From assembly GCA_053919585.1 (NCBI GenBank), contig JBSSHM010000258.1: DNA of 64,000 nt, one strand, 5' to 3'. This stretch comes from Euprymna scolopes. Lineage: Eukaryota. Positions 16,222 through 38,088 of this stretch are shown here, piece by piece. The notes below the pieces were generated by a model. It saw only the letters and a list, made by a program, of their open reading frames with translations. It was not told where the DNA came from and made no database searches. Made by a program: the position numbers and the translations under genes. Each line of letters starts with the position of its first letter. The first letter of the stretch is position 1.

Positions 16222-16732
16222 TTAGTTTGTTTTAATAATAATGGGAATAATATTGAATGTTTTTTCAATGTTTTGAGCGATTTTTCTTGCTGCTTTTTTA
16301 TCGCTAATTTCTTGCTCTAGTCGAACTGCATAGATGTTTGATGTGGTTTTTCTTTGTTTATATAGTTTGGTATTGTAGTTATTTTTTTTCAACATTTTTA
16401 TCAATTCTTGAGCATAGTTTTTTTCACTATAAGAAGCTATTTGGACAATCCATACAGGGTTTTCTTGCTTGGGGTCAATTTTTGTTATAGTCGATTCACT
16501 TTGTTTAATCTCTTTAGCATTATTAGGCAAAGTGATTTTACGAACAATAACTTTATTCGTCAATTCGTTTTTTGTTGATTAGTTATTTCTTTGTGTTGCT
16601 TTCAGAAGATTGTTTGTTTGTTTGATTAGAATCTATATTTGAAGAAATAAACACAATTAAGCTAATCAATACAATAATGGAACCAATCCATATTGTTGCA
16701 CCAATTAATAGTGCTTTAAATTCTAGATTCAT
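16222..16732 (-). CDS. dedD: SPOR-domain cell division protein, frameshifted
   Basis: N-terminal TM helix from ATG 16732 ([15 protein letters not shown]..), SPOR-like WIVQIASYS; downstream of folC. Confidence 0.65.
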
Positions 16733-18090
16733 CGGCAAGATACTCACGTTTCAATCTTTGTGTTTTTAATGGCATTTTAACTAACCCTATTAATAGGAAT
16801 GATCCGAAAACCACGTACCTACTATCAGAATTATCTTTGTTTTGATTGATTTTGTGTATAAAATCATTTTCTTGGTAAAATTCGATAGCATTAAGCTTGA
16901 CTCCATTTTTTATTAAAGCTTGTAGGATTTGATCTTTTTTCATTGCTCGAATAGTGTCTGTAAGCTCAACGATGTGCCATGTATGAATAATGGGTTGGGC
17001 AAGTTTTATAATCGTTTCAACCTCTTTATCATCCAAACATGTAAAAATCGCATCAATTTTTTTTTCATTAGATAGGTGAGATAAAACAGAGACCAAATTA
17101 TTCACAGACTCTGGATTATGTGCAACATCTAACCAACCTTGTATACTGTCATAATGAAAAGGCTCTAAACGACCAAATCGTTGCATAGTTTTCAATGCTA
17201 AATTTGTCGCATCAGAATTTAATTCAATGGCAATGCTCATCAAACTAGTTATGGACAAGGCTAAATTATTTAATCTAACGATTTGAGATTGATAGGGTTT
17301 TTCTAAAAAGTTCATAAAATTAATGCTAAGACTCTTTTTTTTTGCTTTATCTTTATCTTCATAGGTATAAATCTCTCTCTCTATATCTATGCAAAAATCT
17401 TGTTTATTAAGCAATATATTGGCATTTTTTTGCTTGGCGATCTGCAAACATTCATGAGGTAATTCAGATGCTAAAATCACGGTTTTATTTATTCTTAATA
17501 ATTCCTGCCTTTTCCTGAGCAATTTTTTCTAAAGATCTCCTAACCATGTTTATGCTCGAGGCTAATTGAGGTGATAATTGCACAATCATTTTCAATGATA
17601 TTGGTTGCATCTAAACGACCACCTAGCCCAACTTCAAGAATAATCAGTGTACACTGAAGTTGTTTAAGCACCATAGTGCACATAAGGTTGTGAACTCAAA
17701 GTAGCTTAGAGTAATATTGTGTTTTTTTGCAACAATGAAAAACAGTATTGAACGCTTCTAACAAGTATTCATCACTTATATTACCACCATTGATACGAAT
17801 TCTCTCATTAAAAGAAACTAAATGTGGAGAAGTATAAAGCCCTACTTCTCTTGATGTGCAAGAGCAATGCTCTCCGTAAAATAACAAGTTGTTCCTTTGC
17901 CATTACTACCTGCCACAGTAATAATCTTAGTTGATTCTGAGAATTTAGTGACTTGTAGGAGTTTAGCAGCCTGATTGACTGCCTCTAATCCGGGGTTAAT
18001 TAGATGAGAAGGTGCATTTTCCTCTAACCCAAGCAAAAGCTTCTTTTATAGATTGAAAAGTAAGCAAGAAAGTTAAGTGTTAAAATGACA
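16716..18090 (-). CDS. folC: Dihydrofolate/folylpolyglutamate synthase, multiple frameshifts; start approximate
   Basis: Fragments [40 protein letters not shown]. Confidence 0.9.
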
Positions 18091-18098
18091 AATATAGC

Positions 18099-18981
18099 TT
18101 AGATGCTTGCCATGGATGGCTGGTCTTTCAATATGCACAGTATTTCGTATATTTTTATTGGCAGACGACTACGTTTGACCACCATATCAATCGCACCATG
18201 TTCGAGCAAAAATTCACTGGTTTGAAAGCCTTCTGGAAGATTTTCTCGTACAGTTTGTTCAATTACTCGGCGACCTGCAAAACCAATGGTTGCTTTAGGT
18301 TCTGCAATGATAATATCACCTAGCATGGCAAAACTAGCAGAGACCCCTCCCATCGTTGGATCGGTGAGTACAGAGATAAAAGGAACTCGTTGTTTATTCA
18401 TTTGCTTAATTATTGCACTGGTTTTAGCCATTTGTGTCAGTGAAAACATGGACTCTTGATTCTTGCTCCACCACTTGATGAAAAGCAGATAAAAGGATTA
18501 TTCTATCTAAAGCATATTGTGCCGCTCGAACAAATTTTTCACCAACCACTGCCCCCATAGAGCCACCCATGTAGGTAAATTCAAACGCTGCAGTAACCAC
18601 GGATAATCCTTTTAGTGTGCCAGCAATACAAATAAGTGCTTCTTTTTCTTGGGTGTTTTTTGTAGCTTTGCTAATTCTATCGGTATACTTGACGCTGTCT
18701 TTAAATTTGAGTACATCAACTGGCGTAAGATAGGGGGATAGTTCAAGTTGATTCTCTTCATCTAAGAAGGATTCTAAGCGTTTGCGAGCAGTAATACGCA
18801 TGTGGTGTCCACATTCGGGCAAACATAGGCTTGTTTTTCCACTTCATTGTGATAGAGCGTGGCATCACAAGCATTACATTTTAACCACAGCCCTTCGGGA
18901 ACATTCAGTTTTTGCTCCATTTTCTTCTTCATCATGTTCCCATAAAATCTTTTTAGGGTTTAATTTGTCTAACCAATTCAT
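18099..18981 (-). CDS. accD: Acetyl-CoA carboxylase carboxyltransferase beta subunit, frameshifted
   Basis: MNWLDK start, zinc finger, [34 protein letters not shown]. Confidence 0.95.
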
Positions 18982-19009
18982 AATTGTTTTTATTCACTTA
19001 TAGCATTTT

Positions 19010-19795
19010 TTAATTTTGCAGTAAACTGCCCGACTTTTTTATCCCACTACTCACATCACTATTATAATCTGCCAGTAAGCTGATTATTTGGGAACCAACG
19101 ACTATTCCATCAGCATGTTTAGAAAGTTGCTTAGCACTCTCTACATCTTTTACTCCAAAACCAACTATGACTGGGATATCAGTATGATTTTTTATTTGAC
19201 TAATTGATTCGCCAATTGCTTTTTGTTGAGATTGTAAAGAATCACTACCTGTTACTCCTTTAAGGGCGACGTAGTATATAATCCAGAGGCATATTTTATA
19301 AATATTTCTGTCTTTCTTTAGAAGTGGTTGGAGCAACCAAAATAATGCGAGCAATTGCATTATTCTCACATATTCTACCCCAAGTATCTTTAGGTTCCGG
19401 CTGTAAGTCAACCGTTAGTAAACCATCAACACCATTCTCTTTAGCTTGCTTAGCATAGTTTTCCCAACCAAAAGCTTCAATTGGATTGGCATAACCCATT
19501 AATACTAATGTGTATGTTGATTATTTTTTCTAAATTCAGCAACTAAAGAAAGTACTTTTTCTAAATTCATGCCATTCTTAATGGCAGTAAAACTGGATTG
19601 TTGAATAATTGGTCCATCAGCGACAGGATCAGAAAATGGTACACCTATTTCTATAATATCAGCACCATTTTCAACCAATGCATGTAGTAGTGGTAATGTA
19701 CTTTCTTCGGTAGGATATCCCGCTGTAATAAAGGGGATTAGAGCCACTTTTTCTTTTGACTTCAGTTCGTTAAATAGATGATTGATTCGGGACAT
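19010..19795 (-). CDS. trpA: Tryptophan synthase alpha chain, frameshifted
   Basis: EIGVPFSDPVADGP, MGYANP, GVTG, VGFGV across three ORF fragments. Confidence 0.95.
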
Positions 19796-19825
19796 AAGTG
19801 AATAGATAAAAATAATCTGTTTTTT

Positions 19826-21033
19826 TAGTTTACATTTGTCTTTTTTTTCAATAGTACGTACAGAGTCTATATCTTTATCACCTCTTCCTGATAAAACAGA
19901 CAATGATGTGTTTATCTTTAGATAAATTTTGTGCTATTTTTTTTGCATAAGCCAAAGCGTGACTGGTTCAAGTGCAGGGATAATGCCTTCTGTACGAGTC
20001 ACCTCATAAAAAGCCTCTATTTTTCATGATCATCAGCATAGGAGTATTTTACACGTTTCATATCTTTAAGATAGGAATGTTCAGGCCCTACTCCGGGATA
20101 GTCTAAACCTGCTGAGATTGATTGGGTATCCATTATTTGCCCATTATCATCCATCATCAAGTAAGTGCGATTACCATGCAAAATCCCAGGTTTTCCAGCA
20201 CATAAAGGAGCAGCATGTTGATTGTTAGAAAGCCCTAGTCCGCCTGCCTCAACACCATGAATTTCTACCTCTTGATCGTTTAGAAAGGGGTAAAATAATC
20301 CCATTGCATTTGAACCCCCGCCAACGCAAGCAACCAGAATATCAGGTAATTTACCAATTTGGGCAACACTTTGTTCACGAGTTTCTTCACCTATAATTTT
20401 TTGAAAATCTCTTACCATCTCTGGATAAGGATGTGGACCAGCAACTGTACCAATAGCATAAAAAGTGTTATCAACATTTGTTACCCAGTCTCTCAATGCT
20501 TCGTTTAGAGCATCTTTTAAGGTGCGTGTTCCAGACTTTACTGGTACTACTTCTGCTCCTAGAAGTTGCATACGATAGACGTTAATGGCTTGACGGGAAA
20601 CATCTTTTTCACCCATGTACACCACACAGGGGATATCTAACAAGGCTGAGACGGTAGCACTTGCAACACCATGTTGTCCTGCTCCTGTTTCTGCAATAAT
20701 GCGTGTTTTACCCATTTTTTTAGCCAGTAAAATTTGACCAATGGTATTATTAATCTTGTGTGCACCAGTGTGGTTAAGATCTTCTCGTTTAAAATAAATT
20801 TGTGCCCCACCAACTTGATTGGACCATTTTTTTGCATGGTATAGAGGGGTTGGACGCCCAACATAAGAAGTTAAAAGATTTTTTATTTCGGCAAGAAATT
20901 GAGGGTCGTTTTTATATTTCTCATAAGCTTTGGTGAGTTCATCAAGTGGGTAGATTAGATTTTCAGCAACAAAACGTCCGCCAAATTCCCCAAAATATCC
21001 TTGTGAGTCTGGATTTTGAAAAAAGTCTTTCAT
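19826..21033 (-). CDS. trpB: Tryptophan synthase beta chain, C-terminal frameshifts; end approximate
   Basis: [45 protein letters not shown] in shifted frame. Confidence 0.96.
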
Positions 21034-22976: not shown

Positions 22977-24263
22977 CTATAGATATTTTTTCACCCGAAT
23001 ATCTGCAGTACGGGCATGTGCTTCCATCCCTTCTAAACGTGATAAACGTGCAGTCGCTTTACCCACATATTCAGTGGCATGCTTATCTAAACGTTGATAA
23101 GATAAGACTTTAATGAATTTTTGTACAGACAAACCACCTGTGTATTTTGCTACGCCTCTTGTTGGTAACACATGATTTGTGCCTGAGCATTTGTCACCGT
23201 ATGCAACGGTAGTTTCTTCACCCAAAAATAGTGAGCCGTAATTATTAAGATTTTCTAACCACCAGTTTAATTCTTGTGCTTGTATTTCTAAGTGTTCAGC
23301 AGCGTATTCATCACTAACTTGCACCATTTCCTCTCGTGTATCACATAGGACAACTTCTCCATATTCTGCCCATGAAGTCTCAGCAGCATTTCTGGCATCT
23401 TGAGGTAATTCTTCAATTAATTGGGGAACACGTTGGATAACTTTTTCTGCCAATTTTCTGTCATCAGTAATCAGCCAAGCGGGTGAATCTAAGCCATGTT
23501 CTGCTTGTCCAACAAGATCAACTGCCACAATCTCTGCATCAGCAGTTTTATCGGCAATAATTGCAATTTCTGTTGGTCCTGCAATTTGATCAATACCAAC
23601 GCCACCAAATAATTGACGTTTAGCTTCAGCAACGAAACGATTACCTGGTCCAACTAACATATTAACAGGTGTGATGCCAAAAAAACCATTGGTCATGGCA
23701 GCAACGCCCTGCACTCCTCCCATAGAGAGAATCTTATCTGCACCACAATAGTTCATAGTATAGAGAATATGTGGATCAATGCCCTCTTCTCCTCTCGGCG
23801 GAGAACAGGCAACAATTTTTTTAACGCCAGCAATTTTTGCTGTAGTAATGGTCATAATTGCACTACAAATATGAGCATAGCGCCCACCGGGTACATAGCA
23901 ACCTACACTATGAATGGGACGCAGAACATGACCGGCAAAAACACCTGGAGTGAGTTCCACCTCACACTCTCCAAGAGCATTTTTTTGTGCTTCAGCAAAA
24001 CGACTAACGTTAACATGAGCATAATGAATATCTTCTTTTGCTTGATCGCTTATTTTTGCACTAGCCTCTTCTATTTGCTTAGTAGTAACTAAAGGATTGC
24101 CTTTGTAATTATCTAATTTCTCAGCATATTCTAGTGCTTTTTTCTCACCATCAGCAGCGGACATTTCTTGTAACATTGTTGTGACAACGGCTTCTGTATC
24201 AGCATTGGCAGTGGCAAATTGTGAAAAATCTGCCTGAGATTTTTTAAGATAGGTAATTGACAT
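22977..24263 (-). CDS. hpsN: Sulfopropanediol (DHPS) 3-dehydrogenase, HisD-like family
   Basis: HpsN-clade features from memory: MSITYLKK start, CYVPGGRYAHI, QAEHG, EETTVAYGDKCSGTNHVLPT, LEGMEAHAR; cotranscribed with suyAB. Confidence 0.85.
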   Translation of the reverse strand: MSITYLKKSQADFSQFATANADTEAVVTTMLQEMSAADGEKKALEYAEKLDNYKGNPLVTTKQIEEASAKISDQAKEDIHYAHVNVSRFAEAQKNALGECEVELTPGVFAGHVLRPIHSVGCYVPGGRYAHICSAIMTITTAKIAGVKKIVACSPPRGEEGIDPHILYTMNYCGADKILSMGGVQGVAAMTNGFFGITPVNMLVGPGNRFVAEAKRQLFGGVGIDQIAGPTEIAIIADKTADAEIVAVDLVGQAEHGLDSPAWLITDDRKLAEKVIQRVPQLIEELPQDARNAAETSWAEYGEVVLCDTREEMVQVSDEYAAEHLEIQAQELNWWLENLNNYGSLFLGEETTVAYGDKCSGTNHVLPTRGVAKYTGGLSVQKFIKVLSYQRLDKHATEYVGKATARLSRLEGMEAHARTADIRVKKYL

Positions 24264-24290
24264 AATAAATTCTCACATAAATTTGATGAC

Positions 24291-25463
24291 TTAAGCACTA
24301 CGATACAATTTAGTCATCACAAACTCTTTATGTTTGAGAATTTCAGCCATTGTATAACGCCCACTTGCCGTTTCTAAAATATTTTCCTTTAGCAAATCAC
24401 CTGCTTGATCAATAGTGATTTCACGAGTTAATACTCCAGAAACATCAACATCTACATGTTCACCCATTGTTCGAACAGTTCTTGGATTTCCCGTGATTTT
24501 CACTACGGGTACAACAGGATTGCCAACAACATTACCTTGACCAGTAGGAAAAGTGTGTACAACATAACCTGCAGCTGCCATTAATGTTACGCATTCAGCA
24601 GCAGCAGAAGAAGTGTCCATAAAATAAAGTCCATTTCCTTTGGAGGGTGCTTCTGCCGGTTTAAGTACATCAATGTACTTCACTTTACGTCCAATTTTTT
24701 CTAAGTTTCCTAGGGCTTTTTCTTCTATTGTAGTTAATCCTCCAAGAATGTTGCCTTTTGTTGGTTGGGAATCGGATAAATCAGAAGTTTTATGAGGTTC
24801 AATAACTTCATCTTGGTAGGCTTGCCATGTTGCCATGAATTTCTCTGCTGCTTCAGGCGTGGCTGCACGTTCTTTACAAAGATGCTCTGCACCGGTAATC
24901 TCAGAGGTTTCACCAAAAACACCATAAAGACCTTTGGGAATCCATTTGTCATACATATTCCCCACTGCTGGACATGATGAGAGTCCTGTTGTTGTATCAG
25001 ATTCTCCACATTTTGTGGATACCCATAAATCACTAATAGCACATTCTTCACGTCGCCATCCACTTGTTTGGTGTACCAATTCATGCGCCATACGAGAAGC
25101 CTCAGCAATGGTATTTATATCACCTTTTTGCTCAATAGAGAAAGCTTCAACTCGTTTGCCTGTTTTACGAATACCATCAGCTATAATATTCGTCCAACCT
25201 GGTTCAATACCAATCACGACAACAGTGGCAATGTTTGGATTGCTGCCAATACCAATCATCGTCCGAAAATGTAACTCAAGGTCCTCACCAAATTGCAAAC
25301 GACCATAGGAATGAGGCAAAGCTAATGTACCATGAATATTTGCTGCAACGGCTTCACAAGCTGCGTTTGAAATATCATCAACTGGTAAAATGGCGACATA
25401 ATTTCTTACTCCTACTCGTCCATTTTCACGACGATAACCTAAAAATAATTCATTATTACTCAT
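24291..25463 (-). CDS. suyB: (2R)-sulfolactate sulfo-lyase beta subunit (UxaA family)
   Basis: [44 protein letters not shown]; split alpha/beta architecture next to hpsN. Confidence 0.87.
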
Positions 25464-25524
25464 AATTTTAATCTCAATATCTATTTTATTATCTTAATAA
25501 TTTGTACTTGTCTTTATTGCTTTT

Positions 25525-25812
25525 TTACCATCTTTTGGTTTTTAAATTATGTGTATGCACATGCTCACCTTTGCCCACAGCTTGAATGATTTTACCGATA
25601 TCTTGTCCATATTTTATAACGGTATCTCCTTTAGCAAAGTCTTGTAGAGCAATTTTATGACCAATAGGCACATCATCTTTAGAAACTAATTCAAATTGTG
25701 AATTGTCCTCTGTAGTAACACAGAGCATAGAAGTAGATTGACTAAGCCCTTCAACAACGACAACACCAACATTGTCTTTTTTGTGATGAACTAGTAATTG
25801 TGGTTTTGACAT
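25525..25812 (-). CDS. suyA: (2R)-sulfolactate sulfo-lyase alpha subunit (SAF domain)
   Basis: DNVGVVVVE, VPIGHKIAL..VIKYG..GEHVHTHNLKTKRW. Confidence 0.87.
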   Translation of the reverse strand: MSKPQLLVHHKKDNVGVVVVEGLSQSTSMLCVTTEDNSQFELVSKDDVPIGHKIALQDFAKGDTVIKYGQDIGKIIQAVGKGEHVHTHNLKTKRW

Positions 25813-25862
25813 AAATTTCTCCTTAATCTTTTATATTTTTTTACAAATTCATATTATTTGAT

Positions 25863-27476
25863 TTATTTGTTATCCGATAGAATCATATCCGAGGCTTTTT
25901 CGGCAATCATAATTGCTGGTGCATTGGTATTGCCTGATACAATGGTTGGCATAATTGAACAGTCAACCACCCGCAATCCTTCTACTCCATGTACCTTTAG
26001 CTTGTGATCAACAACCGCAGTTTTATCATCCTTATTTCCCATTTTACATGTACTTGTTGGGTGATAAATGGTTTGACTATATTGCCTAGCAACATGCAAT
26101 AATTCATCATCACTCTGATAGCGATTACCCGGGACAAATTCATCAATGATATGTTTTTTCAATGAAGGTGCTTGAGCAATTTTACGTGCAACTTTTATGG
26201 AATCAATAGCAACTTTTTGATCCCTTTCATCACTGAGATAATTTGGATAAATCTTTGGATAATCCAAAGGATTGCTTGATTGGATTTCTATTTTTCCTCT
26301 ACTATAAGGTCTTAATTGACATACAGAGGCGGTGAATGCAGAGAAAGGATGAACGCCATCTCCTGGCTTATCAGCACTAAGTGGCTGCATATGAAACTGA
26401 ATATCTGGACGTGTAAGTTGTGGATTTGACATGGTAAAAACAGCTACTTGGCTTGCCGCAAGAGTTAATGGTCCAGTTCGGAATAATCCATATTGAATAC
26501 CCACTTTCATTTGCTTAATGTAACTATTTAGTTCGTCATTCAATGTAGCAAGACTTGTTTTGTAAACCAATCGAATTTGCAAGTGATCTTGTAAATTTTG
26601 ACCAACACCGGGCAATTCTTTAACCACATCAATATTAAATTTTTTCAATAATTCTTTATCACCAATTCCTGAAAGTTGTAGTAATTGAGGAGAGTTAATT
26701 GCTCCGCCACTTAATATCACTTCTTTGTGGCATTTAATCACGTGGGTTTTGTTTTTATGAATGCATTCAACTCCTACAGCTCTTCCTTCTTCAAAAATAA
26801 CCTTTGTCACTTGAACACATGTTTTGATAGCAAGATTTTTTCTTCTGCGAATAGGATGGATGTAGGCTCTTGCTGAGCTATGACGAAAACCTTTGTGTGC
26901 TGTTTGTTCAAAATATGACACACCCTCTTGAACTTCTTCATTATATTTTTCGTTATATGGAATACCAATTTCTTGTGCTGCTTGTACAAAATGTTCTGCA
27001 ATTTCTCTGCGTAAACGAAGATTGGATACAACCAATGGTCCTTTGTCTGAGCGATAAGAAGAGAGCTTTCCTTTTCTGTTCTCAGATTTTTTAAAATATG
27101 GCAAGACATCTTTGAATGACCATCCTGTATTACCCTCTCTTTCCCAGTCATCATAATCTTCACGTTGACCCCGTACATACAATAAACCATTTAATGAACT
27201 TGAGCCACCCATTACTTTTCCACGAGGCCATTGTAAAGAGCGATTGTTGATTCCTTCGTCAGGCTCAGTTTTGTAACACCAATCCCATTTTTTACTATGC
27301 ATAGTTTTAAAATAACCCACAGGAATGTGAATCCAAGGAGAATAATCCCAGCTTCCTGCTTCCAATAGAACTACTTTATTTTTAGGGTCTTCCGACAAAC
27401 GATTTGCAACGACACAACCTGAAGAACCAGCACCAACAACAATGTAATCACACTCACTAAAAGAATACGTACTCAT
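25863..27476 (-). CDS. GMC-family FAD oxidoreductase, substrate unknown
   Basis: GAGSSG, PRGKVMGGSSSLNG, VGQNLQDH, YHPTSTCKMG, GNTNAP. Confidence 0.92.
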   Translation of the reverse strand: MSTYSFSECDYIVVGAGSSGCVVANRLSEDPKNKVVLLEAGSWDYSPWIHIPVGYFKTMHSKKWDWCYKTEPDEGINNRSLQWPRGKVMGGSSSLNGLLYVRGQREDYDDWEREGNTGWSFKDVLPYFKKSENRKGKLSSYRSDKGPLVVSNLRLRREIAEHFVQAAQEIGIPYNEKYNEEVQEGVSYFEQTAHKGFRHSSARAYIHPIRRRKNLAIKTCVQVTKVIFEEGRAVGVECIHKNKTHVIKCHKEVILSGGAINSPQLLQLSGIGDKELLKKFNIDVVKELPGVGQNLQDHLQIRLVYKTSLATLNDELNSYIKQMKVGIQYGLFRTGPLTLAASQVAVFTMSNPQLTRPDIQFHMQPLSADKPGDGVHPFSAFTASVCQLRPYSRGKIEIQSSNPLDYPKIYPNYLSDERDQKVAIDSIKVARKIAQAPSLKKHIIDEFVPGNRYQSDDELLHVARQYSQTIYHPTSTCKMGNKDDKTAVVDHKLKVHGVEGLRVVDCSIMPTIVSGNTNAPAIMIAEKASDMILSDNK

Positions 27477-27600
27477 ATAATAAAAACAATAAAAAATTTA
27501 ATAGCGACAATAAAGATTGCTAATCAAGAAAATTTTAGCAAAAAAATCCTTGGTGAACAAATTAAATAAAAATTAAATTCGTAATTTTTATAAAAATCCA

Positions 27601-27630
27601 TTGACAATCTTACAATAGTTTGGTTAAATT
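27601..27630 (+). promoter_or_regulatory. Sigma-70 promoter for the TRAP operon
   Basis: Perfect TTGACA at 27601, 17-18 bp spacer, ttaaat/taaatt -10. Confidence 0.6.
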
Positions 27631-27638
27631 TTGCAAAT

Positions 27639-27846
27639 GCTATTCTAATATATCAAGCATCATCTAGGCAGGATATGTGCTTGTGCTAATTATAAATCTA
27701 ACAGATACATATCTTGCGTAGTCTAAGTAGTTAAACACTTTCTACAATTCAGTGGTAGTACTTTAAACTCAAGCATGACGGGTTGGAATAGCTAAAAAGG
27801 CTTTTGCATGTATTCTTTTTTTAGATAACTAACTGAGAATAAATGC
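27639..27846 (+). ncRNA. Candidate structured 5' leader RNA
   Basis: 11-bp closing stem 27639-49/27782-92, 12-bp inner stem 27668-79/27706-17, third hairpin 27806-16/27836-46. Confidence 0.4.
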
Positions 27847-27895
27847 TAGAGATTAATAACTTATAAAAATTTTATTTTAATGGAGTAGTTGTATT

Positions 27896-29002
27896 ATGCA
27901 TAACTTTAAAAAAATTATTGGACTTGCTTTAGTAGGTCTATTTGCGTTAGGTTCTGTAGCACACGCAAAAACCACGAAAATTCGTGTTCAATCTGTTTTA
28001 CCAACTAAGGCAGACGAAGTTGTCATGTTGAAAGATTTTGCCGATAACGTCAAACAATTGACTAACGGTTCTGTTCAATTAGAAATTCTTCCTGCTGGAG
28101 CAGTTGTTGGTGTTAAAGAAACATTGGAAGCTGTTGACAAAGGACTTATTGAGGGTGGATTTGCTTGGACTCACTATTGGTCTGGTTATCATCCTGCAGC
28201 CATGTTATTTGGTTCACCTGTTGCGGGTGCTGGCGTAGGTATTGATAATATTGCTTTTATTTCTTGGTTTATGTATGGAGGCGGTAAAGAACTCTATGAT
28301 CAACTGTGGAAAGAAATGAAGATGAACATTAAAGGAATCATGCTTCAGCCGGTTGGACCTGAGGCTCTAGGTTGGTTTAAAAAGCCAATTAAAAGCATGG
28401 CTGATTTCCGTAAATATCGTTTCCGTACACCTCCTGGACTCCCTGGGCAAACTTATAAAGATATTGGTATTGCTGCTGTTGCTATGGGCGGTGGTGATAT
28501 TCTCCCTGCACTGGAAAAAGGCGTTATTGATGCTGCTGAATGGTGCTGTCCTAAACCAGATAGCGTGTTTGGTTTCCAAAAAGTACTTAAGCACTATTAC
28601 CTACAAGGGCTTCATCAGGTGGTTGTGAATGCAGATTTATACATCAATGGTAATGTATGGAAAAAGCTTACTGCTGATGAGAAAAATGCAATCAAAGTCG
28701 CTGCCGATGCTTCACTAATCCGTTCACTGTCTTACAGAATTTATGAAAATGGTAAAGCATTGAAAGATTTGACAGAAAATTGGGATGTACAACTTCATGA
28801 TACACCTGAAGATTATTTTGTTGAGTATATGGATGCAGCTAAGAAATTGTTAAACAAAAATGCTAAGAAAAATAAATTCTTTGCAAAAGTTTGGCAATCA
28901 CAAAAAGACTTTGCACGCATTGCCGTACCTTATTGGGCTGGAGCTCAAACTGCTAATGCAAACTTGGGACAAGCTTATGCTCAAAGTATTATGAAGAAGT
29001 AA
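27896..29002 (+). CDS. dctP: TRAP transporter substrate-binding protein
   Basis: Signal peptide, EILPAGAVV, FRTPPG, ALEKGVIDAAEW. Confidence 0.93.
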   Translation: MHNFKKIIGLALVGLFALGSVAHAKTTKIRVQSVLPTKADEVVMLKDFADNVKQLTNGSVQLEILPAGAVVGVKETLEAVDKGLIEGGFAWTHYWSGYHPAAMLFGSPVAGAGVGIDNIAFISWFMYGGGKELYDQLWKEMKMNIKGIMLQPVGPEALGWFKKPIKSMADFRKYRFRTPPGLPGQTYKDIGIAAVAMGGGDILPALEKGVIDAAEWCCPKPDSVFGFQKVLKHYYLQGLHQVVVNADLYINGNVWKKLTADEKNAIKVAADASLIRSLSYRIYENGKALKDLTENWDVQLHDTPEDYFVEYMDAAKKLLNKNAKKNKFFAKVWQSQKDFARIAVPYWAGAQTANANLGQAYAQSIMKK

Positions 29003-29029
29003 ATATCCCTACAATAAAATGTTTCTTTA

Positions 29030-29067
29030 AAGGGGGATGGTTTTTTTAACAACTGTCCCCCTTATTT
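29030..29067 (+). terminator. Stem-loop after dctP (terminator or mRNA stabiliser)
   Basis: aagggggatggtt / aactgtccccctt stem. Confidence 0.65.
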
Positions 29068-29099
29068 GTATTTAATCTAAAAAAAACTTACATAATCTT

Positions 29100-29702
29100 A
29101 TGTCTACCACGAATGAACCTCAATTTGAAGTTGCTGATGAGTTGATCGCAGAGGGTCATCAGTATCAACCTCCTCCAGAGGACATGGCTTCTTGGATGAG
29201 AAAAATAATTATTTTTATTGATGCATTTAGCTACTATACAGGAAAAATTGTTAGCTGGCTGACTGTACCAATTATCGCAGCTATGTTTTATGAAGTTGTC
29301 GCCAGACACTTTTTTCTTGCTCCTACTGTTTGGGCATATGATATTAGTAGAATGCTTTATGGAGCCTTGTTTATGCTGGGTGCTGGTTATGCCCTTATGC
29401 GTGGAGTCCATATTCGAGCAGATTTTATTTATAGAAACTGGCAACCAAAAAATCAAGCTAAAATCGATTTACTCTTATACCTAACCCTTTATTTTCCAAC
29501 GATGATTGTTTTTTTCTTCGTAACTTTTGACTATGCTTCAGAAGCATGGATGCGAGGTGAGAGAGGCATGGATACGGCATGGATGCCTCCAATGGCTCCA
29601 ATCAAATCAACTATTCCTATTGGAGTAAGCTTTTTAATTATCCAAGGTGTTTCTGAAACATTGAAATGCTATTATGCTATTAAAAAGAATGTTTGGCCAT
29701 AA
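29100..29702 (+). CDS. dctQ: TRAP transporter small permease
   Basis: Four TM helices, YEVVARH, HIRAD. Confidence 0.92.
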   Translation: MSTTNEPQFEVADELIAEGHQYQPPPEDMASWMRKIIIFIDAFSYYTGKIVSWLTVPIIAAMFYEVVARHFFLAPTVWAYDISRMLYGALFMLGAGYALMRGVHIRADFIYRNWQPKNQAKIDLLLYLTLYFPTMIVFFFVTFDYASEAWMRGERGMDTAWMPPMAPIKSTIPIGVSFLIIQGVSETLKCYYAIKKNVWP

Positions 29703-29811
29703 AAAGTCAGATAAATAAGTTCCATTCTTTTTACACATTAAGATTAGTTCTATGTTAGTCTACGTGTAATCAGTTTATAAAAATTAATTACAAAAAAATA
29801 CTACAACAATC

Positions 29812-31137
29812 ATGTCTCCCGAAATTCTTGGTCTCGTGCTGATAGGATCTATGCTCTTTGCTATCTTTATCGGCTTTCCTATTTCTTTTACCCTAATTTT
29901 TCTTGGCTTAGTTTTTGGTTATGCTGGCTTTGGAGATTTAGTTTTTTATCTCATGACTTTTCAATTTAATAATGTCATGTTAGAGCAAACGCTTGCAGCC
30001 GTCCCTCTATTTATCTTTATGGGAATATTGATGGAAAAGGCAAATCTCATGGAGCGTTTATTTACAGCTGTACAACAAATGCTTTCTCGTGTTAACGGTT
30101 CATTGTTTATTGCTGTGTTATTTGTTTCAACTATTTTTGCCGCTGCAACAGGCATTGTTGGTGCTTCTGTCACTATCTTAGGGATTATGGCTGCAAAAAC
30201 CATGAATCGCTCTAATTATGATGTTAAACTGGCTGCTGGAACCATCACTGCCGGAGGCACATTAGGTATTCTTATTCCACCAAGTATCATGTTGGTTGTG
30301 ATGGGACCTATTCTCGAAGTTCCTGTTACCGATCTTTTTGCTGCGGCCATCATTCCTGGAATAATGCTGGCTTTTTTATATTCTGCATATGCTATTATTC
30401 GTTGCTATTTAAACCCTTCATTAGGTCCAGCACTGTCAGAAGAAGAAAGACCAAAATCCATGGCGCATGTATGGAGAGAATTTTTCCTCGGACTTGTCCC
30501 ACCAGCTGCACTTGTTGGTTGTGCTTTAGGTAGTATCGTGTTTGGTCTGGCAACTCCTACTGAAGGTGCTGGTATTGGTGCAGTAGGTGCTCTTGCTCTT
30601 TCTGCATCTTATGGAAAACTTAACATGTCTAACTTAAAAGATGCATTGATTAAAACATTAGAGATTTCTACATTGATTTTAGTCTTAGTTGCTGCATCTA
30701 ACTTCTTTGGTGCTGTTTTCTCTAGACTAGGCACACCTACAATGGTTACCGAATTATTGCTTGGGTTAGATATGCACCCAATGATTATCCTGCTTCTTAT
30801 TATGGCAGTTATCTTCTTACTTGGCTGGCCTTTAGAATGGGTTCCTATTGTATTGATTGTTATCCCTATTTTGTTGCCTTTAATCAATGAATTGGGAATT
30901 AATCTTCTTTGGTTTGGTATATTGGTGGCTGTGAATTTACAGACTGCTTGGCTCTCCCCACCCGTAGCACTCTCCGCATACTTTCTTAAAGGAGTTGTAC
31001 CGGAGTGGGATCTCAAGGATATTTATTATGGAATGATGCAATTTATGGTTATTCAGGGTATTGGTTTAACATTGATTATACTGTTCCCAGAAATTGCGAC
31101 ATGGTTACCAGAATATCTAACAAATAAGCCTGGTTAA
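29812..31137 (+). CDS. dctM: TRAP transporter large permease
   Basis: AVPLFIFMG, GGTLGILIPPSI, TPTE, LSPP. Confidence 0.95.
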   Translation: MSPEILGLVLIGSMLFAIFIGFPISFTLIFLGLVFGYAGFGDLVFYLMTFQFNNVMLEQTLAAVPLFIFMGILMEKANLMERLFTAVQQMLSRVNGSLFIAVLFVSTIFAAATGIVGASVTILGIMAAKTMNRSNYDVKLAAGTITAGGTLGILIPPSIMLVVMGPILEVPVTDLFAAAIIPGIMLAFLYSAYAIIRCYLNPSLGPALSEEERPKSMAHVWREFFLGLVPPAALVGCALGSIVFGLATPTEGAGIGAVGALALSASYGKLNMSNLKDALIKTLEISTLILVLVAASNFFGAVFSRLGTPTMVTELLLGLDMHPMIILLLIMAVIFLLGWPLEWVPIVLIVIPILLPLINELGINLLWFGILVAVNLQTAWLSPPVALSAYFLKGVVPEWDLKDIYYGMMQFMVIQGIGLTLIILFPEIATWLPEYLTNKPG

Positions 31138-31160
31138 GTCATTATATTAGTGAATAATTA

Positions 31161-32135
31161 ATGACGGTACTTATTTTTCCTATAATAGCCCTTATTGGAG
31201 GGTTGGTTGTGCTGACGTATAGTGCAGATTATTTCACAGATGGAGCTATTTCTCTTGCGAAAAATCTCAACATATCAACCCTCACTATTGGACTATTTGT
31301 ACTAGGTTTTGGTACATCTGCACCTGAAATGGTTATCTCTGCTCTTTCAAGCTTTGAGGGGTTAAGTGGGTTAGCAGTTGGTAATGTTATTGGATCAAAT
31401 ATTGCCAATGTCGGCTTAGTATTAGGTATTTCTGCTTTAATTTTCCCAATACCCATTAAAAAAAGAACGCTTAAGTTTGAAACTACATTGATGATAATTA
31501 TTTCTATAATTGTTGTCATAGCAATGTTATGGGATAAAAAACTAGATGTAAGCGATGGTTGGTTGTTAGTTTTCTTATTTTTATCAGTTATTGCATTATT
31601 CTATTATCAGTCTATTCGTCGAAAATCAAAAAAATGTGATAATGACAGCTTAATGTTAGATGATGAAATTGATATGTCTTTGCAGAAATCAGTTTTTATT
31701 ACAATTACTTCCTTAGTTTTCCTAGTGCTAAGTGCTCGTATAACGGTATGGGGAGCATCAGGGATAGCTTCATATTTCTCCATTAGTGATACATTTATTG
31801 GTTTAACGATTATTGCTATTGGTACCAGTCTGCCGGAGCTTGCGGCGGCAGTGAGTGCCAGTTTAAAAAAACATTCTGATTTAACCATTGGCAATATTCT
31901 AGGTTCAAATCTTTTCAATCTTCTAGTTGTTTTGCCCTTCCCTGCTTTTGTAAGCGGTTTTCAAATCTCTGAACGTTTTGTCTACTTAGATATACCGGTT
32001 ATGTTAGGATTGTCGTTACTGATTCCAGTTGTGGCATTATTGAATAAGCATATGCAAATTAATCGTATTAGTGGCATGATAATGTTATCTATATATATTG
32101 GTTATATAGGAACACTACTTGCACTAACTTATTAA
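31161..32135 (+). CDS. Ca2+/Na+ antiporter (YrbG/CaCA family)
   Basis: Alpha repeats GTSAPE..GNVIGSN and GTSLPE..GNILGSN. Confidence 0.92.
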   Translation: MTVLIFPIIALIGGLVVLTYSADYFTDGAISLAKNLNISTLTIGLFVLGFGTSAPEMVISALSSFEGLSGLAVGNVIGSNIANVGLVLGISALIFPIPIKKRTLKFETTLMIIISIIVVIAMLWDKKLDVSDGWLLVFLFLSVIALFYYQSIRRKSKKCDNDSLMLDDEIDMSLQKSVFITITSLVFLVLSARITVWGASGIASYFSISDTFIGLTIIAIGTSLPELAAAVSASLKKHSDLTIGNILGSNLFNLLVVLPFPAFVSGFQISERFVYLDIPVMLGLSLLIPVVALLNKHMQINRISGMIMLSIYIGYIGTLLALTY

Positions 32136-32212
32136 CCAAAATCCTTATAATAGAAGTTGTTTATTATGGGTTATCTATATGATCTTTTTCATACTCAATA
32201 ATTAAATGCATA

Positions 32213-32274
32213 AAAACAATATCTTTTTTTTAGATATTGTTTTGAAAATATATCAAATAAATTAGATATTGTTT
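32213..32274. promoter_or_regulatory. 12-bp inverted repeat plus third half-site upstream of prx-cysJIG
   Basis: aaaacaatatct-T7-agatattgtttt, then agatattgttt again at ~32264. Confidence 0.35.
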
Positions 32275-32361
32275 GCTTTATAATTTATTTATAAGTTTGA
32301 TTTCATTGCATTATTGCAAAAATATCAATTTTTATTAACAAACAAAAACAAAAACAAAGAC

Positions 32362-32994
32362 ATGGCAATTCAACTCGGAGACATTGTTCCTGATTTTCAA
32401 CAGGACTCAACACAAGGAACTATTTCATTTCATGAATGGTTAGGCGATAGCTGGGGAGTTTTATTCTCTCATCCAAAAGACTTTACACCAGTTTGCACCA
32501 CGGAATTAGGACGAGCAGCTGCATTAAAAGATGGCTTTGCCAAACGCAATGTAAAAATTATTGGTTTATCTGTTGACGGTTTAGAGAATCATGAAAAGTG
32601 GTTTGAAGATATTAAAGAAACTCAAGGGCAAGAAGTTAATTTTCCTGTGATTGCTGATCATGATAGGAAAGTTTCTGGTCTATACGGCATGATTCACCCT
32701 AATGCCAGTGATACACTCACCGTGCGTTCTGTTTATGTGATTGATCATAATAAAAAGCTTCGATTAACCATTACGTATCCAGCTAGTACCGGACGTAATT
32801 TTGATGAGCTATTACGTGCTATTGATAGCTTACAGCTTACTGATAATTACAAAGTTGCTACCCCTGTTGATTGGAAATCTGGTGATGATGTTATTATCGT
32901 ACCTGCTATTAGCAATGAACAAGCAAAAGAACTTTTTCCTCAAGGATGGGACGAACAAAAACCTTATTTGCGAGTCGTTAAACAACCGGGTTAA
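32362..32994 (+). CDS. 1-Cys peroxiredoxin (Prx6/LsfA-like)
   Basis: FSHPKDFTPVCTTE, YPASTGRNFDE; ATG 32362. Confidence 0.93.
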   Translation: MAIQLGDIVPDFQQDSTQGTISFHEWLGDSWGVLFSHPKDFTPVCTTELGRAAALKDGFAKRNVKIIGLSVDGLENHEKWFEDIKETQGQEVNFPVIADHDRKVSGLYGMIHPNASDTLTVRSVYVIDHNKKLRLTITYPASTGRNFDELLRAIDSLQLTDNYKVATPVDWKSGDDVIIVPAISNEQAKELFPQGWDEQKPYLRVVKQPG

Positions 32995-33017
32995 TATTTT
33001 ATTCATCCCTACATATT

Positions 33018-33051
33018 ATAAAAAGGTCTCTTAATTGGGACCTTTTTATTT
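33018..33051 (+). terminator. Intrinsic terminator after peroxiredoxin
   Basis: ataaaaaggtctc-ttaatt-gggacctttttat. Confidence 0.7.
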
Positions 33052-33080
33052 AGTCATTTGGACTTCCAAAATCTAAAACT

Positions 33081-34844
33081 ATGCGAGATTATACTCAACT
33101 TATACAAGAGATTAAACAATTAGATAGAGATTCACTTCTCCGTCTCAGTGGATTTTTGGATGCATTGCTTGTTGATTCAACCCTAGCATCGATAACTACC
33201 ATACCCGATAGCGCCAACCCAAATGTTAATGAATCAAGCAAGGTTCTTGTTGCCTTTGCTTCACAAAGTGGTAATGCTGAAAATATTGCTTTACAGTTAA
33301 CTGAAAAGCTACAAGCTGCTCCTAACTATGACATTACGTTAACTGATGTTTCCGAGCTAAATATTAAAAAGCTTAACCACTATCATTATATTTTTATTAT
33401 TGCCAGTACACATGGAGAAGGTGAACCACCAGATACCGCTATACAATTTCATGAACAACTTAAATCCAATCGTGCCCCTAAATTAGAAGGAGTTGAATAT
33501 GGAGTTATTGCACTGGGAGATAGTAGCTATGAGCAGTTTTGTTCATTTGGAATATGGATTGATCAGCGTTTATCTGAATTAGGTGCAAAGTCTTTGATTG
33601 AACGACTTGATTGTGATGTAGATTATGATGATACAGTTGAAAAATGGCAGGATAAACTCACAGATGCGTTGTCTACAAGCAACCATATACAATCCCCTAC
33701 TCAAGCGAATAATCAAGTTGCTAAACATACTGGCAACTATACAATTAAAAACCCGTTAGAAGTTGAGGTTATCTCTAACATTGATTTATGTACGGATAAA
33801 GCGAATAAACATGTCCACCATCTAGAATTAGAGCTTCTAAGTGAGGAAATAAGTTATTTACCCGGTGATAGTTTAGGAATTTCAATCAGCAATCCTGAAA
33901 AAATGGTTGATGAATTGATTGCTTTATTAGGTTTGGCTGAAGATGAAGAAGTTGAATTCAATCATAAGAATTATACTCTTAAAGAATGTTTGAATCACGA
34001 TGCTGAATTGTTCAGAATCACACAAAAACAATTAGATTCTTTAGTGAAAAAACATCCAAATAAAGAGCTAAAAAGAGCCATGGATAGCTCTCAAGATATT
34101 TCAGAGTTTATTTTTAGCCAAGATTGGTTAAGCTTACTTAGGCATTATACTAAAAGCCCATTTACACAAGCTCAAGAATTTATTGATTATCTTAATCCTC
34201 AGGGACAAAGATTGTATTCTATTGCTTCAAGCCCTCTTGCTCATGAAGATGAAGTACATCTGTCTATTCGTCTTCGTGAATTTGGTGATGAAAAAAGGTT
34301 GGGGTTGATTTCTGACAAAATAAGCCAAGTTAATGATGGCGATAAAGTAAACGTTTATCTCAAGCCTAATAAAAATTTTCGTTTGCCAAATGATGATTCT
34401 ACACCAATTATTATGATTGGCTCAGGAACTGGCATTGCCCCATTTAGAGCTTTTTTATTTCATCGCTTAGAACTTGGTATCACTTCACCTGCTTGGCTAT
34501 TTTTTGGTGAGCAATCTTTCAGGAATAGCTTCCTCTATCAAACTGACTGGTTAAAGTTAATTGAAAAAAAATCACTTACTGAATTTACTGTTGCCTTTTC
34601 TCGAGAAGAAAAAGAAAAATACTACGTACAAGATAGATTGCGAGAAAATTCTAAAGAAGTCTATCAATGGATCGAACAAGGAGCAATTATCTATGTATGT
34701 GGAAGTGCTGAAGGGATGGCAGCCTCTGTACATAACGCCTTGATTGATATTATCAGTGAACAGTCTGGAGTAAATAATGAAGCAGCAACTCAAAAACTTC
34801 AACAACTCATGATAGAAGGAATGTATAAACGAGATGTTTACTAA
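33081..34844 (+). CDS. cysJ: Sulfite reductase (NADPH) flavoprotein
   Basis: Flavodoxin SQSGNA/STHGEGEPPD, RLYSIASS, GTGIAPFR, YVCG, YKRDVY. Confidence 0.94.
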   Translation: MRDYTQLIQEIKQLDRDSLLRLSGFLDALLVDSTLASITTIPDSANPNVNESSKVLVAFASQSGNAENIALQLTEKLQAAPNYDITLTDVSELNIKKLNHYHYIFIIASTHGEGEPPDTAIQFHEQLKSNRAPKLEGVEYGVIALGDSSYEQFCSFGIWIDQRLSELGAKSLIERLDCDVDYDDTVEKWQDKLTDALSTSNHIQSPTQANNQVAKHTGNYTIKNPLEVEVISNIDLCTDKANKHVHHLELELLSEEISYLPGDSLGISISNPEKMVDELIALLGLAEDEEVEFNHKNYTLKECLNHDAELFRITQKQLDSLVKKHPNKELKRAMDSSQDISEFIFSQDWLSLLRHYTKSPFTQAQEFIDYLNPQGQRLYSIASSPLAHEDEVHLSIRLREFGDEKRLGLISDKISQVNDGDKVNVYLKPNKNFRLPNDDSTPIIMIGSGTGIAPFRAFLFHRLELGITSPAWLFFGEQSFRNSFLYQTDWLKLIEKKSLTEFTVAFSREEKEKYYVQDRLRENSKEVYQWIEQGAIIYVCGSAEGMAASVHNALIDIISEQSGVNNEAATQKLQQLMIEGMYKRDVY

Positions 34845-34855
34845 GAAATAAAAGA

Positions 34856-36601: not shown

Positions 36602-36630
36602 TGCTAAATTCAAAGAAAGCTTAAATTCGT

Positions 36631-38088
36631 GTGTCTTATTTTCCTTTCTTTTTTGATCTCAAAAAGTTTCGCATTCTCGTTATTGGTGGTGGAGATATTG
36701 CATTAAATAAAATTCGACTACTTTCATCTTACCAAGCTAATATCACGGTTATTGGCTTAGAAATTAAAGAAGAGATTCGGCAAAGATTACAAGCAAATCA
36801 GTATTCACAAATCCACCAGCGAGCATTTGATACTACTGATTTAGATGATGCTGATGTTGTTATAGTTGCCACTAATAACCAAGAGTTAAATACACAAGTT
36901 TGGAAGCTTGCTAAAGAAAAAAATAAAATCGTTAATGTGGTTGATGATAAAGATAAATGCGATTTTATCTTCCCTGGAATTGTCAACAGAGGAGAATTGA
37001 CTATTGCTATCAGCACCTCTGGTGTGGCTCCTACTATTGCTAGTTGGTTTCGTGGAAAATTAGAAAGTGAAATACCGCAATCTTGGTCTGCTATTCTGCA
37101 ATCACTTAAAAAACAGCAAAAAAATATCCGCAAAAACCTTCCTGATATTCGTCATAGAAGGCGATTTTACAGAAGTTTACTTGAAAATATTCTTCCACGC
37201 TTTCTAAAACAGCAACGCCCATCTCATGAAAATATAACTGAAAAAATAAGCAAACCGAGTTCATTTAATATTGAAGAAATTGAACACCATATCCTGCAAC
37301 ATCTCTCCTCCCATAATAATACGAGTAATTCTGAAAATTATTCATCGATTAAACAAGCTAAAGTTTATCTAGTTGGTGCAGGTCCAGGAGATCCTGAGTT
37401 GCTGACATTACGTGCCTTACAAACCATTCAACAAGCAGATGTCATACTCTATGATCGACTAATTAGCAATGAGTTATTAGACTATAGTCGCCGTGATGCA
37501 GAAAAAATATTTGTTGGTAAACAAGCAAAAAATCACAGCAAAACTCAACAAGAAATTAATCAATTACTTATCAATTTAGCGAAAAAAGGTAATGTCATTG
37601 TTCGACTTAAAGGTGGCGATCCCTTTATTTTTGGTCGTGGTGGTGAAGAAATGGATATACTGCAAAAAAATAATATTGATGTGGAGATTGTCCCTGGAAT
37701 TAGTGCTGTAAACGGTATTGCTGCTGATCTTGGCATTCCACTAACTCTTAGAGGAATCTCTGATAAACTACTACTAACCAGCATTTATGCTACACAACCT
37801 CATCCAGTAAATTGGCAACAACTCACTCTACCACGCCAAACCCTAGCTCTGTACATGGGTTTGCAAAACCTCTCTGAAATCAGCACGCAACTTATTGCTC
37901 ATGGTCTACAGGCAAACACTCCCATTGCTCTAATAGAAAAAGGAACCTTTCTTAATCAAAAAGCACACTACAGCACTTTACAATACACTCGGTCAGAAAC
38001 CTATGTGCAACAAACTGGATTCCAATCTCCTGTGCTAAGTATTATTGGTGAAGTGGTTAATCATCGTAAAAAAATTTACAAAGATTAA
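36631..38088 (+). CDS. cysG: Siroheme synthase
   Basis: VIGGGDIA N-domain; LVGAGPGDPELLT, RLKGGDPFIFGRGGEE. Confidence 0.95.
   Translation: MSYFPFFFDLKKFRILVIGGGDIALNKIRLLSSYQANITVIGLEIKEEIRQRLQANQYSQIHQRAFDTTDLDDADVVIVATNNQELNTQVWKLAKEKNKIVNVVDDKDKCDFIFPGIVNRGELTIAISTSGVAPTIASWFRGKLESEIPQSWSAILQSLKKQQKNIRKNLPDIRHRRRFYRSLLENILPRFLKQQRPSHENITEKISKPSSFNIEEIEHHILQHLSSHNNTSNSENYSSIKQAKVYLVGAGPGDPELLTLRALQTIQQADVILYDRLISNELLDYSRRDAEKIFVGKQAKNHSKTQQEINQLLINLAKKGNVIVRLKGGDPFIFGRGGEEMDILQKNNIDVEIVPGISAVNGIAADLGIPLTLRGISDKLLLTSIYATQPHPVNWQQLTLPRQTLALYMGLQNLSEISTQLIAHGLQANTPIALIEKGTFLNQKAHYSTLQYTRSETYVQQTGFQSPVLSIIGEVVNHRKKIYKD

Follow-up and report, generated by a model that had tools for sequence, protein, structure and literature searches.

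The 64-kb stretch of DNA analysed here (the window; all positions refer to this part of Euprymna scolopes assembly GCA_053919585.1, contig JBSSHM010000258.1) carries on its minus strand four open reading frames (ORFs) in a row, encoding an oxidoreductase of the glucose-methanol-choline (GMC) superfamily, the two subunits SuyA and SuyB of sulfolactate sulfo-lyase, and HpsN, the dehydrogenase of (R)-2,3-dihydroxypropane-1-sulfonate (DHPS). The successive gaps of 50, 61 and 27 bp agree with a preliminary description of this DNA, in which the genes were given as co-directional with gaps of 27-61 bp. That description made no mention of the divergent transporter of the tripartite ATP-independent periplasmic (TRAP) type, encoded on the plus strand from 419 bp upstream of the GMC gene onwards. 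A simple scan revealed no terminator inside or just past the four-gene array, and the next gene beyond hpsN, thiL, lies 182 bp further. On balance, the locus appears to be a marine bacterium's compact gene set for the import and desulfonation of small hydroxy-sulfonates from algae. Its central features, with domain calls made on the window proteins with Pfam and NCBIfam, are the following:

25863-27476, minus strand: GMC-family FAD oxidoreductase, 537 aa (Pfam GMC_oxred_N and GMC_oxred_C)
25525-25812, minus strand: SuyA, (2R)-sulfolactate sulfo-lyase small subunit, 95 aa (weak match to SAF, and one to the N-terminal part of galactarate dehydratase)
24291-25463, minus strand: SuyB, sulfolactate sulfo-lyase large subunit, 390 aa (GD_AH_second and GD_AH_C)
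22977-24263, minus strand: HpsN, (R)-DHPS 3-dehydrogenase, 428 aa (Histidinol_dh)
27896-29002, plus strand: TRAP binding protein DctP of the TakP/lactate-binding type, here DctPw (Pfam DctP)
29100-29702, plus strand: TRAP small membrane subunit DctQ (Pfam DctQ), 78% identical to its orthologue in locus L001
29812-31137, plus strand: TRAP large membrane subunit DctM (Pfam DctM, TIGR00786), 92% identical to its L001 orthologue

The last protein of the array belongs to the histidinol dehydrogenase family, and scores 509.7 bits against the crystallised HpsN of Cupriavidus pinatubonensis (PDB 8v35) but no more than 240 bits against structures of HisD. The residues that define HpsN in the C. pinatubonensis enzyme (CpHpsN) are the His126 motif, which separates HpsN from HisD, and Glu318, His319, Asp352, Lys353 and His359 (Burchill et al. 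2024, PMC11382572); alignment to PDB 8v35 shows all of them kept in the window protein, as H131, E323, H324, D357, K358 and H364. By score and residues it is a true HpsN. SuyA and SuyB are the split small and large subunits expected of a sulfolactate sulfo-lyase, with the UxaA/GarD fold, and are orthologous to suyAB of a proven DHPS cluster, the canonical hpsR-hpsN-hpsO-hpsU-hpsP-suyA-suyB array on a C. pinatubonensis plasmid. Identity to the proteins of that array is 55% for HpsN, 63% for SuyB and 42% for SuyA; SuyB is also 75% identical to its Paracoccus versutus homologue. The earlier view that hpsN and suyAB make up a DHPS/sulfolactate desulfonation unit is supported by the HpsN score and residues and by the SuyA and SuyB identities, and its statement that HpsO, HpsP and a regulator are missing from the window was confirmed, since tblastn of the 64 kb finds no homologue of HpsO, HpsP or IclR and no Thioglobus-type GntR (UTRA-type) regulator. 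The window likewise contains no xsc, pta, sauS, tauE or slcD-like gene.

The GMC protein contains both superfamily domains (PF00732, 6.8e-53; PF05199, 2.8e-39), an FAD-binding GxGxxG motif in which G15, G17 and G20 are invariant, and a catalytic pair, H472/N516, that is invariant in the clade of its relatives and aligns with the corresponding His and Asn of Escherichia coli choline dehydrogenase (BetA). NCBI and JGI records give relatives the name 'choline dehydrogenase', a label that sequence comparison suggests is probably wrong for the whole clade. The window protein fails the BetA equivalog TIGR01810 by a wide margin (526.4 bits against a cut-off of 732.1) and passes the NCBIfam subfamily PRK02106 'choline dehydrogenase' narrowly, by 10 bits (615 against 605), and from so small a margin it follows that the misnaming of the clade is probably systematic. 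It is 39% identical to E. coli BetA. Its Q300 aligns with residue 312 of choline oxidase (PDB 2jbv), a position taken by Glu in both BetA sequences. The window protein and all 92 clade members have Q300 and R302 without exception, and BetA has Tyr at the position of R302. Glu312 of choline oxidase reportedly binds and positions choline, with its cationic head group, so that loss of the acidic residue and gain of an Arg would fit an anionic substrate. The genomic context differs too: in E. coli the order is betA-betB-betI-betT, while the window GMC gene stands between suyA and the divergent TRAP operon and is adjoined by no bet gene; and when the first 83 loci described below were surveyed by gene order and Pfam, with no search by name for betB, betI and betT, none of the three turned up. 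The window enzyme thus resembles BetA and choline oxidase in its GMC fold, FAD motif and catalytic His/Asn pair, and on its predicted substrate it would, like them, oxidise a 2-substituted ethanol; it differs in overall sequence (39% identity), in the replacement of Glu312 by Gln300 with an added invariant Arg302, and in the lack of a bet context.

Homologues of the window GMC protein form a tight family, at 60-81% identity (56-81% when all 154 distinct loci considered below are included); column identity averages 80% in a set of 24, and more than 556 GMC loci were found in species-representative genomes. Neighbouring genes were clustered, and the recurrent ones annotated, for 83 loci, and contexts were counted on 154 distinct loci from genomes and metagenomes; the identities of the xsc, sauS and pta neighbours were borne out by NCBIfam or Pfam. 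In the 83 loci the recurrent neighbours of the GMC gene are IclR, a major facilitator superfamily (MFS) or TRAP transporter, the sulfoacetaldehyde acetyltransferase Xsc (TIGR03457, 1069 bits), Pta, SauS, which is an acylating sulfoacetaldehyde dehydrogenase, and TauE, which exports sulfite, and an IclR gene is present in 97 of the 154, including the locus with the closest relative (L001-3). Representative orders are xsc-pta-IclR-GMC-MFS in Caballeronia NK8, IclR-MFS-GMC-xsc-sulfite oxidase-cytochrome c in Paracoccus sp. TOH, and IclR-MFS-GMC-xsc...pta in P. denitrificans; in Pandoraea and Halomonas the clade GMC gene is likewise found in IclR-GMC-transporter clusters beside xsc, pta, sauS or tauE. 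At 18 Burkholderiaceae loci (L021, L023, L029, L034, L037, L058, L092 and others), pairs of genes for CobS-like (AAA) and CobT-like (VWA) proteins lie beside xsc/pta and GMC, with no obvious link to cobalamin genes seen there.

In Ruegeria sp. AD91A the order is IclR-DctM-DctQ-DctP-GMC, which matches the published order iseR-iseM-iseL-iseK-iseJ of R. pomeroyi (SPO2355-2359; PMC4334477) and places the GMC gene in the position of iseJ. The window GMC protein is 56-64% identical to the products of the GMC genes in such clusters of Ruegeria, Paracoccus, Caballeronia and Pandoraea. Aside from this synteny, we take IseJ to be a GMC-type flavoprotein; a literature search found no paper that joins 'isethionate dehydrogenase' with 'glucose-methanol-choline'. 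The product of IseJ is sulfoacetaldehyde, the substrate for Xsc. When 93 sequences are placed on a maximum-likelihood tree with E. coli BetA as the root, a very long branch separates BetA from the clade. Within the clade the window GMC protein is nested, paired with its 81% identical relative (support 100%); the tree does not resolve the deep backbone. A grouping with bona fide BetA, part of one of the outcomes that the preliminary description had named as counting against its proposal, is not what is seen, given the long outgroup branch, the low identity and the failed equivalog. A metagenome scan gave a best match of 71% identity, so that the nearest relative is still P0001 at 81%. Across the 92 clade members 116 of the 537 positions are invariant, and the window protein keeps all of them. 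By synteny and phylogeny the window GMC enzyme, which had been described as unassigned, is an orthologue of the isethionate dehydrogenase (IseJ) clade, that is, of the GMC gene of isethionate clusters with IclR, an MFS or TRAP transporter, and xsc, pta, sauS or tauE.

The best relatives of the window TRAP binding protein in the PDB are 4yzz, 4yic, 2hzk and 2zzv, which are TakP and lactate-binding proteins. It is not close to R. pomeroyi HpsK (PDB 24gc; E 3e-6, 29.8 bits), and at 22% identity has no sequence relationship to the IseK-type protein of Ruegeria. Orthologues 77-86% identical to it occur in both Alpha- and Gammaproteobacteria, an unusual degree of conservation, and none was found on plasmids; atlas and cluster look-ups placed it in Rhodospirillales, Arenicellales and sponge-associated Gammaproteobacteria, and not in SAR11. 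Three loci were sampled from the side of the binding protein, and GMC and IclR genes adjoin it in each. The window-type TRAP binding protein is the constant partner of the GMC enzyme. The two kinds of context divide according to the transporter. DHPS genes (hpsN, suyB, hpsO-like or hpsP-like) are present in 26 of 43 loci with a binding protein of the window type and in 1 of 60 with an IseK-type TRAP of Ruegeria or an MFS carrier; for xsc, pta, sauS or tauE the corresponding counts are 1 of the 43 and 32 of the 60. The linkage of GMC to hpsN/suyAB, whose conservation had been proposed as a check, is accordingly kept in loci with the window-type binding protein and not elsewhere.

In the window-type clusters this TRAP transporter is the only one seen beside hpsN, from which we infer that it imports DHPS; its binding protein would take DHPS and possibly, or even probably, isethionate. 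It is perhaps relevant that the TRAP binding protein SAR11_0864 is reported to bind isethionate and both DHPS enantiomers, and comes from the HpsNOP-associated cluster most distant from that of HpsK (PMC13335735); Ca2+ was added in its binding assays (Clifton et al. 2024). The window protein resembles it in belonging to the cation-dependent TakP/lactate-binding subfamily and in being likewise HpsNOP-associated. In the MFS family, the carriers of the Paracoccus isethionate-type clusters (L090 7596-8903, L174 6620-7912, L093 6096-7448) share 58-59% identity with the C. pinatubonensis DHPS transporter HpsU, so that isethionate and DHPS carriers are near relatives there too.

Comparison with related loci suggests how the window came by its small gene complement. 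In L001-3, where the GMC protein is 81% identical to that of the window, genes for two IclR regulators, a Na+/Ca2+ exchanger and DctMQP are divergent from GMC-suyA-suyB-hpsN-SDR, the last being an HpsO-like short-chain dehydrogenase/reductase (SDR). The window keeps this core but has neither the IclR pair nor an HpsO-like SDR, and behind its transporter genes come cysJIG. Placement of suyAB directly behind GMC is confined to the window and L001-3 lineages, others having hpsN or hpsP beside the GMC gene. Loci of the Thioglobus/SUP05 type have, beside TRAP-GMC, genes for SuyAB, HpsN, an HpsO-like SDR, an HpsP-like medium-chain dehydrogenase/reductase (46%) and GntR; in relatives from Cocleimonas, Leucothrix and Arenicellales, HpsO and HpsP are likewise encoded, together with an FMN dehydrogenase resembling SlcD. 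The HpsO-like SDR was 49-54% identical to HpsO of C. pinatubonensis in the three cases compared (L001, L007 and L088). Since HpsO-like and HpsP-like genes are retained beside GMC in these relatives, the GMC enzyme is not needed for DHPS there and is not a general replacement for them; the absence of hpsOP, another point proposed earlier for checking, is not general. The minimal state of the window is, on this comparison, a lineage-specific reduction: the absence of HpsO, HpsP and a regulator stands as described, but it is not a feature of the operon type, as relatives keep the genes. Without HpsO and HpsP the window offers no route for (S)-DHPS, and as encoded only (R)-DHPS reaches SuyAB.

The interpretation that best accommodates these findings, to which we assign a probability of about 0.6, is that the locus is a combined island for uptake and desulfonation of isethionate and DHPS, with two branches and a shared, broad transporter. 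The TRAP transporter with its TakP-like binding protein would import DHPS and probably isethionate. In one branch, HpsN would use NAD+ to convert (R)-DHPS into (R)-sulfolactate, SuyAB would cleave this to pyruvate and sulfite, and the adjacent CysJI and CysG (see below) would reduce the sulfite for assimilation. In the other, the GMC enzyme, in what is its most likely role, would act as an IseJ-type dehydrogenase that oxidises isethionate to sulfoacetaldehyde and passes electrons to the respiratory chain; the sulfoacetaldehyde would then need an Xsc, which the window does not encode. The operon itself is a reduced and rearranged form of a module common in marine Gammaproteobacteria, from which the HpsO/HpsP epimerisation pair and the IclR regulators have been lost and in which suyAB-hpsN are joined on directly after GMC. 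Three results support the interpretation. There is nothing unusual in an xsc that does not adjoin the GMC gene, since in R. pomeroyi xsc and pta (SPO3560/3561) lie far from iseJ (SPO2359). On one 13.9-kb contig (L030), some 10 kb hold IclR, GMC, the window-type TRAP, hpsN, the Na+/Ca2+ exchanger and an xsc that is bona fide (922 bits). And the loci of the Thioglobus/SUP05 type leave the GMC enzyme no DHPS step to supply.

Several points weigh against this interpretation. No xsc lies within the 64-kb window, and only one of the 43 window-type loci is xsc-type when 26 have DHPS genes; Fisher p values for the two context splits are 5e-12 (DHPS genes) and 6e-9 (xsc-type), values that are uncorrected for relatedness and come from a set with many short contigs. 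In several independent lineages hpsN, hpsP or suyA directly adjoins the GMC gene in the same orientation, which may mean that the GMC product works on DHPS: GMC lies immediately upstream of hpsN in L019, L119, L120, L139 and L140, comes after hpsP in L122 and L124, and stands ahead of suyA in L001-3 and the window. The assignment to IseJ is built on synteny and phylogeny and not on an assayed IseJ sequence. Finally, the window binding protein may be of the SAR11_0864 kind, but it is likened to that protein by subfamily and gene association, not by sequence.

An unlikely but serious alternative is that the GMC enzyme of clusters with the window-type TRAP is itself a DHPS dehydrogenase, oxidising (S)-DHPS at C2 or DHPS at C3, and so feeding or replacing HpsO/HpsP epimerisation through FAD and the respiratory chain rather than NAD(P)+. 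The context split set out above is what this would predict, as is the repeated joining of GMC with hpsN, hpsP or suyA at the operon level in differing arrangements. There are also loci in which part of the epimerisation pair is present: L001-3 has an HpsO-like SDR but no HpsP-like gene, and L088 combines GMC-TRAP-IclR with an HpsO-like SDR. The chemistry would be plausible, in that the hydroxyl of isethionate is beta to the sulfonate and the same position in DHPS is the chiral C2, so that an IseJ-like site could oxidise one DHPS enantiomer to the ketone that HpsO reduces. Such a role for GMC would be undescribed, since a literature search found no paper linking a GMC enzyme to DHPS. However, loci of the Thioglobus, Cocleimonas and Leucothrix type already have HpsN, HpsO and HpsP together with SuyAB or an SlcD-like enzyme, leaving no step to be filled, and the window lacks HpsO, the reductase that epimerisation by oxidation and reduction requires. 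The GMC tree argues in the same direction: xsc-type and hpsN-type contexts interleave on it, and one clade with 98% support in the Shimodaira-Hasegawa-like approximate likelihood ratio test (SH-aLRT) unites the xsc/tauE-linked gene of a member of the Sedimenticolaceae (L010) with Leucothrix and Cocleimonas genes that lie beside hpsN-hpsO-hpsP. Nor were specificity-type substitutions found between DHPS-linked and xsc-linked GMC copies; the columns that best discriminate between the contexts are conservative (L/V316, D/E373 and V/A375), with residues that are if anything bulkier in the DHPS-linked group. In its broader form, the proposal that GMC with a TakP-like TRAP in marine Gammaproteobacteria (SUP05/Thioglobus, Thiotrichales and sponge-associated lineages) represents an undescribed FAD-dependent DHPS dehydrogenase is similarly doubtful; such an enzyme would be linked to the respiratory chain, perhaps specific for the S enantiomer or for C2, and would provide an entry or epimerisation step in lineages such as that of the window, where HpsP and HpsO have been lost. 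The 'alternative stereochemical interconversion pathway' cited in PMC13335735 was checked, and turned out to involve an enzyme from sulfate reducers and not a GMC protein.

It is improbable that the GMC enzyme acts on some other hydroxy-sulfonate that this transporter also brings in (3-hydroxypropanesulfonate, cysteinolate or sulfolactaldehyde hydrate, for example). GMC enzymes often take several small alcohols. Moreover, R. pomeroyi HpsK binds 3-hydroxypropanesulfonate and isethionate besides DHPS (PMC13335735), and HpsN homologues also oxidise L-cysteinolate (PMC12814064). Against this, no cuyA, cuyB, cuyC or 3-sulfopropionate genes were seen in the loci, which offer no substrate-specific context, and the conserved partners of the clade elsewhere point to sulfoacetaldehyde. 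There is equally little to recommend the idea that the GMC gene survives from the ancestral module without a productive role, kept for its promoter-proximal position and yielding a dead-end product if Xsc is absent. The loss of HpsO and IclR, the split trpA and accD genes nearby and the want of xsc in the window would agree with decay, but the GMC frame is intact, all 116 of the 116 clade-invariant residues are present together with the FAD motif and His472/Asn516, and a split in the essential accD suggests indels in the assembly rather than decay. That the enzyme is an ordinary BetA standing beside sulfonate genes by chance is hardly credible and was rejected: the narrow pass of PRK02106 and the names in public records are outweighed by the failure of TIGR01810 (526 against 732 bits), the 39% identity, the change of Glu to Gln300 with the added Arg302, and the recurrence of the sulfonate context in more than 100 loci.

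On the preferred interpretation, as an isethionate and DHPS island, the locus is a new arrangement of known parts, in which an IseJ-type GMC gene and a TakP-like TRAP are joined to hpsN-suyAB. With the isethionate cluster iseR-iseJ-iseU/iseKLM (Cupriavidus necator H16; R. pomeroyi SPO2355-2359; Weinitschke et al. 2010, via PMC4334477) it has in common the GMC-type dehydrogenase beside a transporter and, in its relatives, IclR; it differs in its binding protein (22% identity to the IseK type), in having no IclR gene or xsc in the window, and in the suyAB-hpsN genes downstream of GMC. With hpsR-hpsN-hpsO-hpsU-hpsP-suyAB of C. pinatubonensis (Mayer et al. 2010; Burchill et al. 2024) it shares the conversion of (R)-DHPS via (R)-sulfolactate into pyruvate and sulfite, but HpsO, HpsP and the LacI regulator are missing, TRAP replaces the MFS carrier HpsU, and GMC leads the operon. 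The R. pomeroyi cluster hpsKLM-hpsNOP-slcD likewise couples TRAP uptake to HpsN; its binding protein is of another TRAP subfamily, and GMC has no counterpart in it.

DHPS and isethionate are major currencies passing from phytoplankton to bacteria. Surveys count hpsN, hpsO, hpsP, suyAB and xsc and leave out the GMC gene, annotated in public records as 'choline dehydrogenase'; the whole clade of such 'choline dehydrogenases', with Gln for Glu and an added Arg in the substrate site, probably consists of sulfonate dehydrogenases. The TakP-like TRAP, with orthologues at 77-86% identity, marks DHPS clusters outside the Roseobacter HpsK type. The stripped-down cluster in the window, wired to assimilatory sulfite reductase, suggests the use of sulfonates as a sulfur source. 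Were the GMC enzyme to oxidise DHPS after all, it would be a new entry step in a globally important pathway.

The features that flank the array on the side of the GMC gene are:

27477-27895, no strand assigned: control region from which the GMC and TRAP operons diverge, with back-to-back promoter-like hexamers
31161-32135, plus strand: membrane protein of the Na+/Ca2+ exchanger family, YrbG-like (TIGR00367)
33081-38088, plus strand: cysJ, cysI and cysG, assimilatory sulfite reductase and sirohaem synthase (TIGR01931, NF010029/TIGR02041, NF007922)

From 27896 to 38088 the genes for TRAP, exchanger, peroxiredoxin, CysJ, CysI and CysG are co-directional with gaps of 11-178 bp, and sulfonate uptake is thus physically coupled to sulfite reduction in the window; the relative L001 has two IclR genes where the window has prx-cysJIG. 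Orthologues of the exchanger occur in the same cluster type in L001-3, L030, L033, L104, L126 and L131. It could balance ions for a Na+-coupled, possibly Ca2+-dependent uptake, or export sulfite; clusters with this TRAP type lack TauE and other exporters commonly used for sulfite. In the control region the promoter-like hexamers occupy 27601-27630 on the plus strand and 27656-27628 on the minus strand. Conservation with L001 (L001 8031-8367) is confined to one block of some 40 bp (about 27600-27639), the rest of the intergenic region having diverged; this block overlaps the promoter-like sites and is a candidate operator, kept though the window has no IclR gene. Rfam detected three tRNAs only in the window, and gave no match in the control region or in the leader of about 265 nt before dctP.

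On the other side of the array, a run of housekeeping genes (16716-19903) is split or truncated. trpA is in two ORFs, 19505-19903 (model positions 1-86) and 19010-19411 (157-238), as is accD (18424-18822 and 18099-18449), and of folC the C-terminal part only is present (16716-17522). Since accD is essential, assembly indel errors are as likely here as real pseudogenes. Downstream of the haem genes, at 42489-44072, lies a gene for a 527-aa subtilisin-like serine protease with mycosin and PrtP-type matches, which is unrelated to the array.

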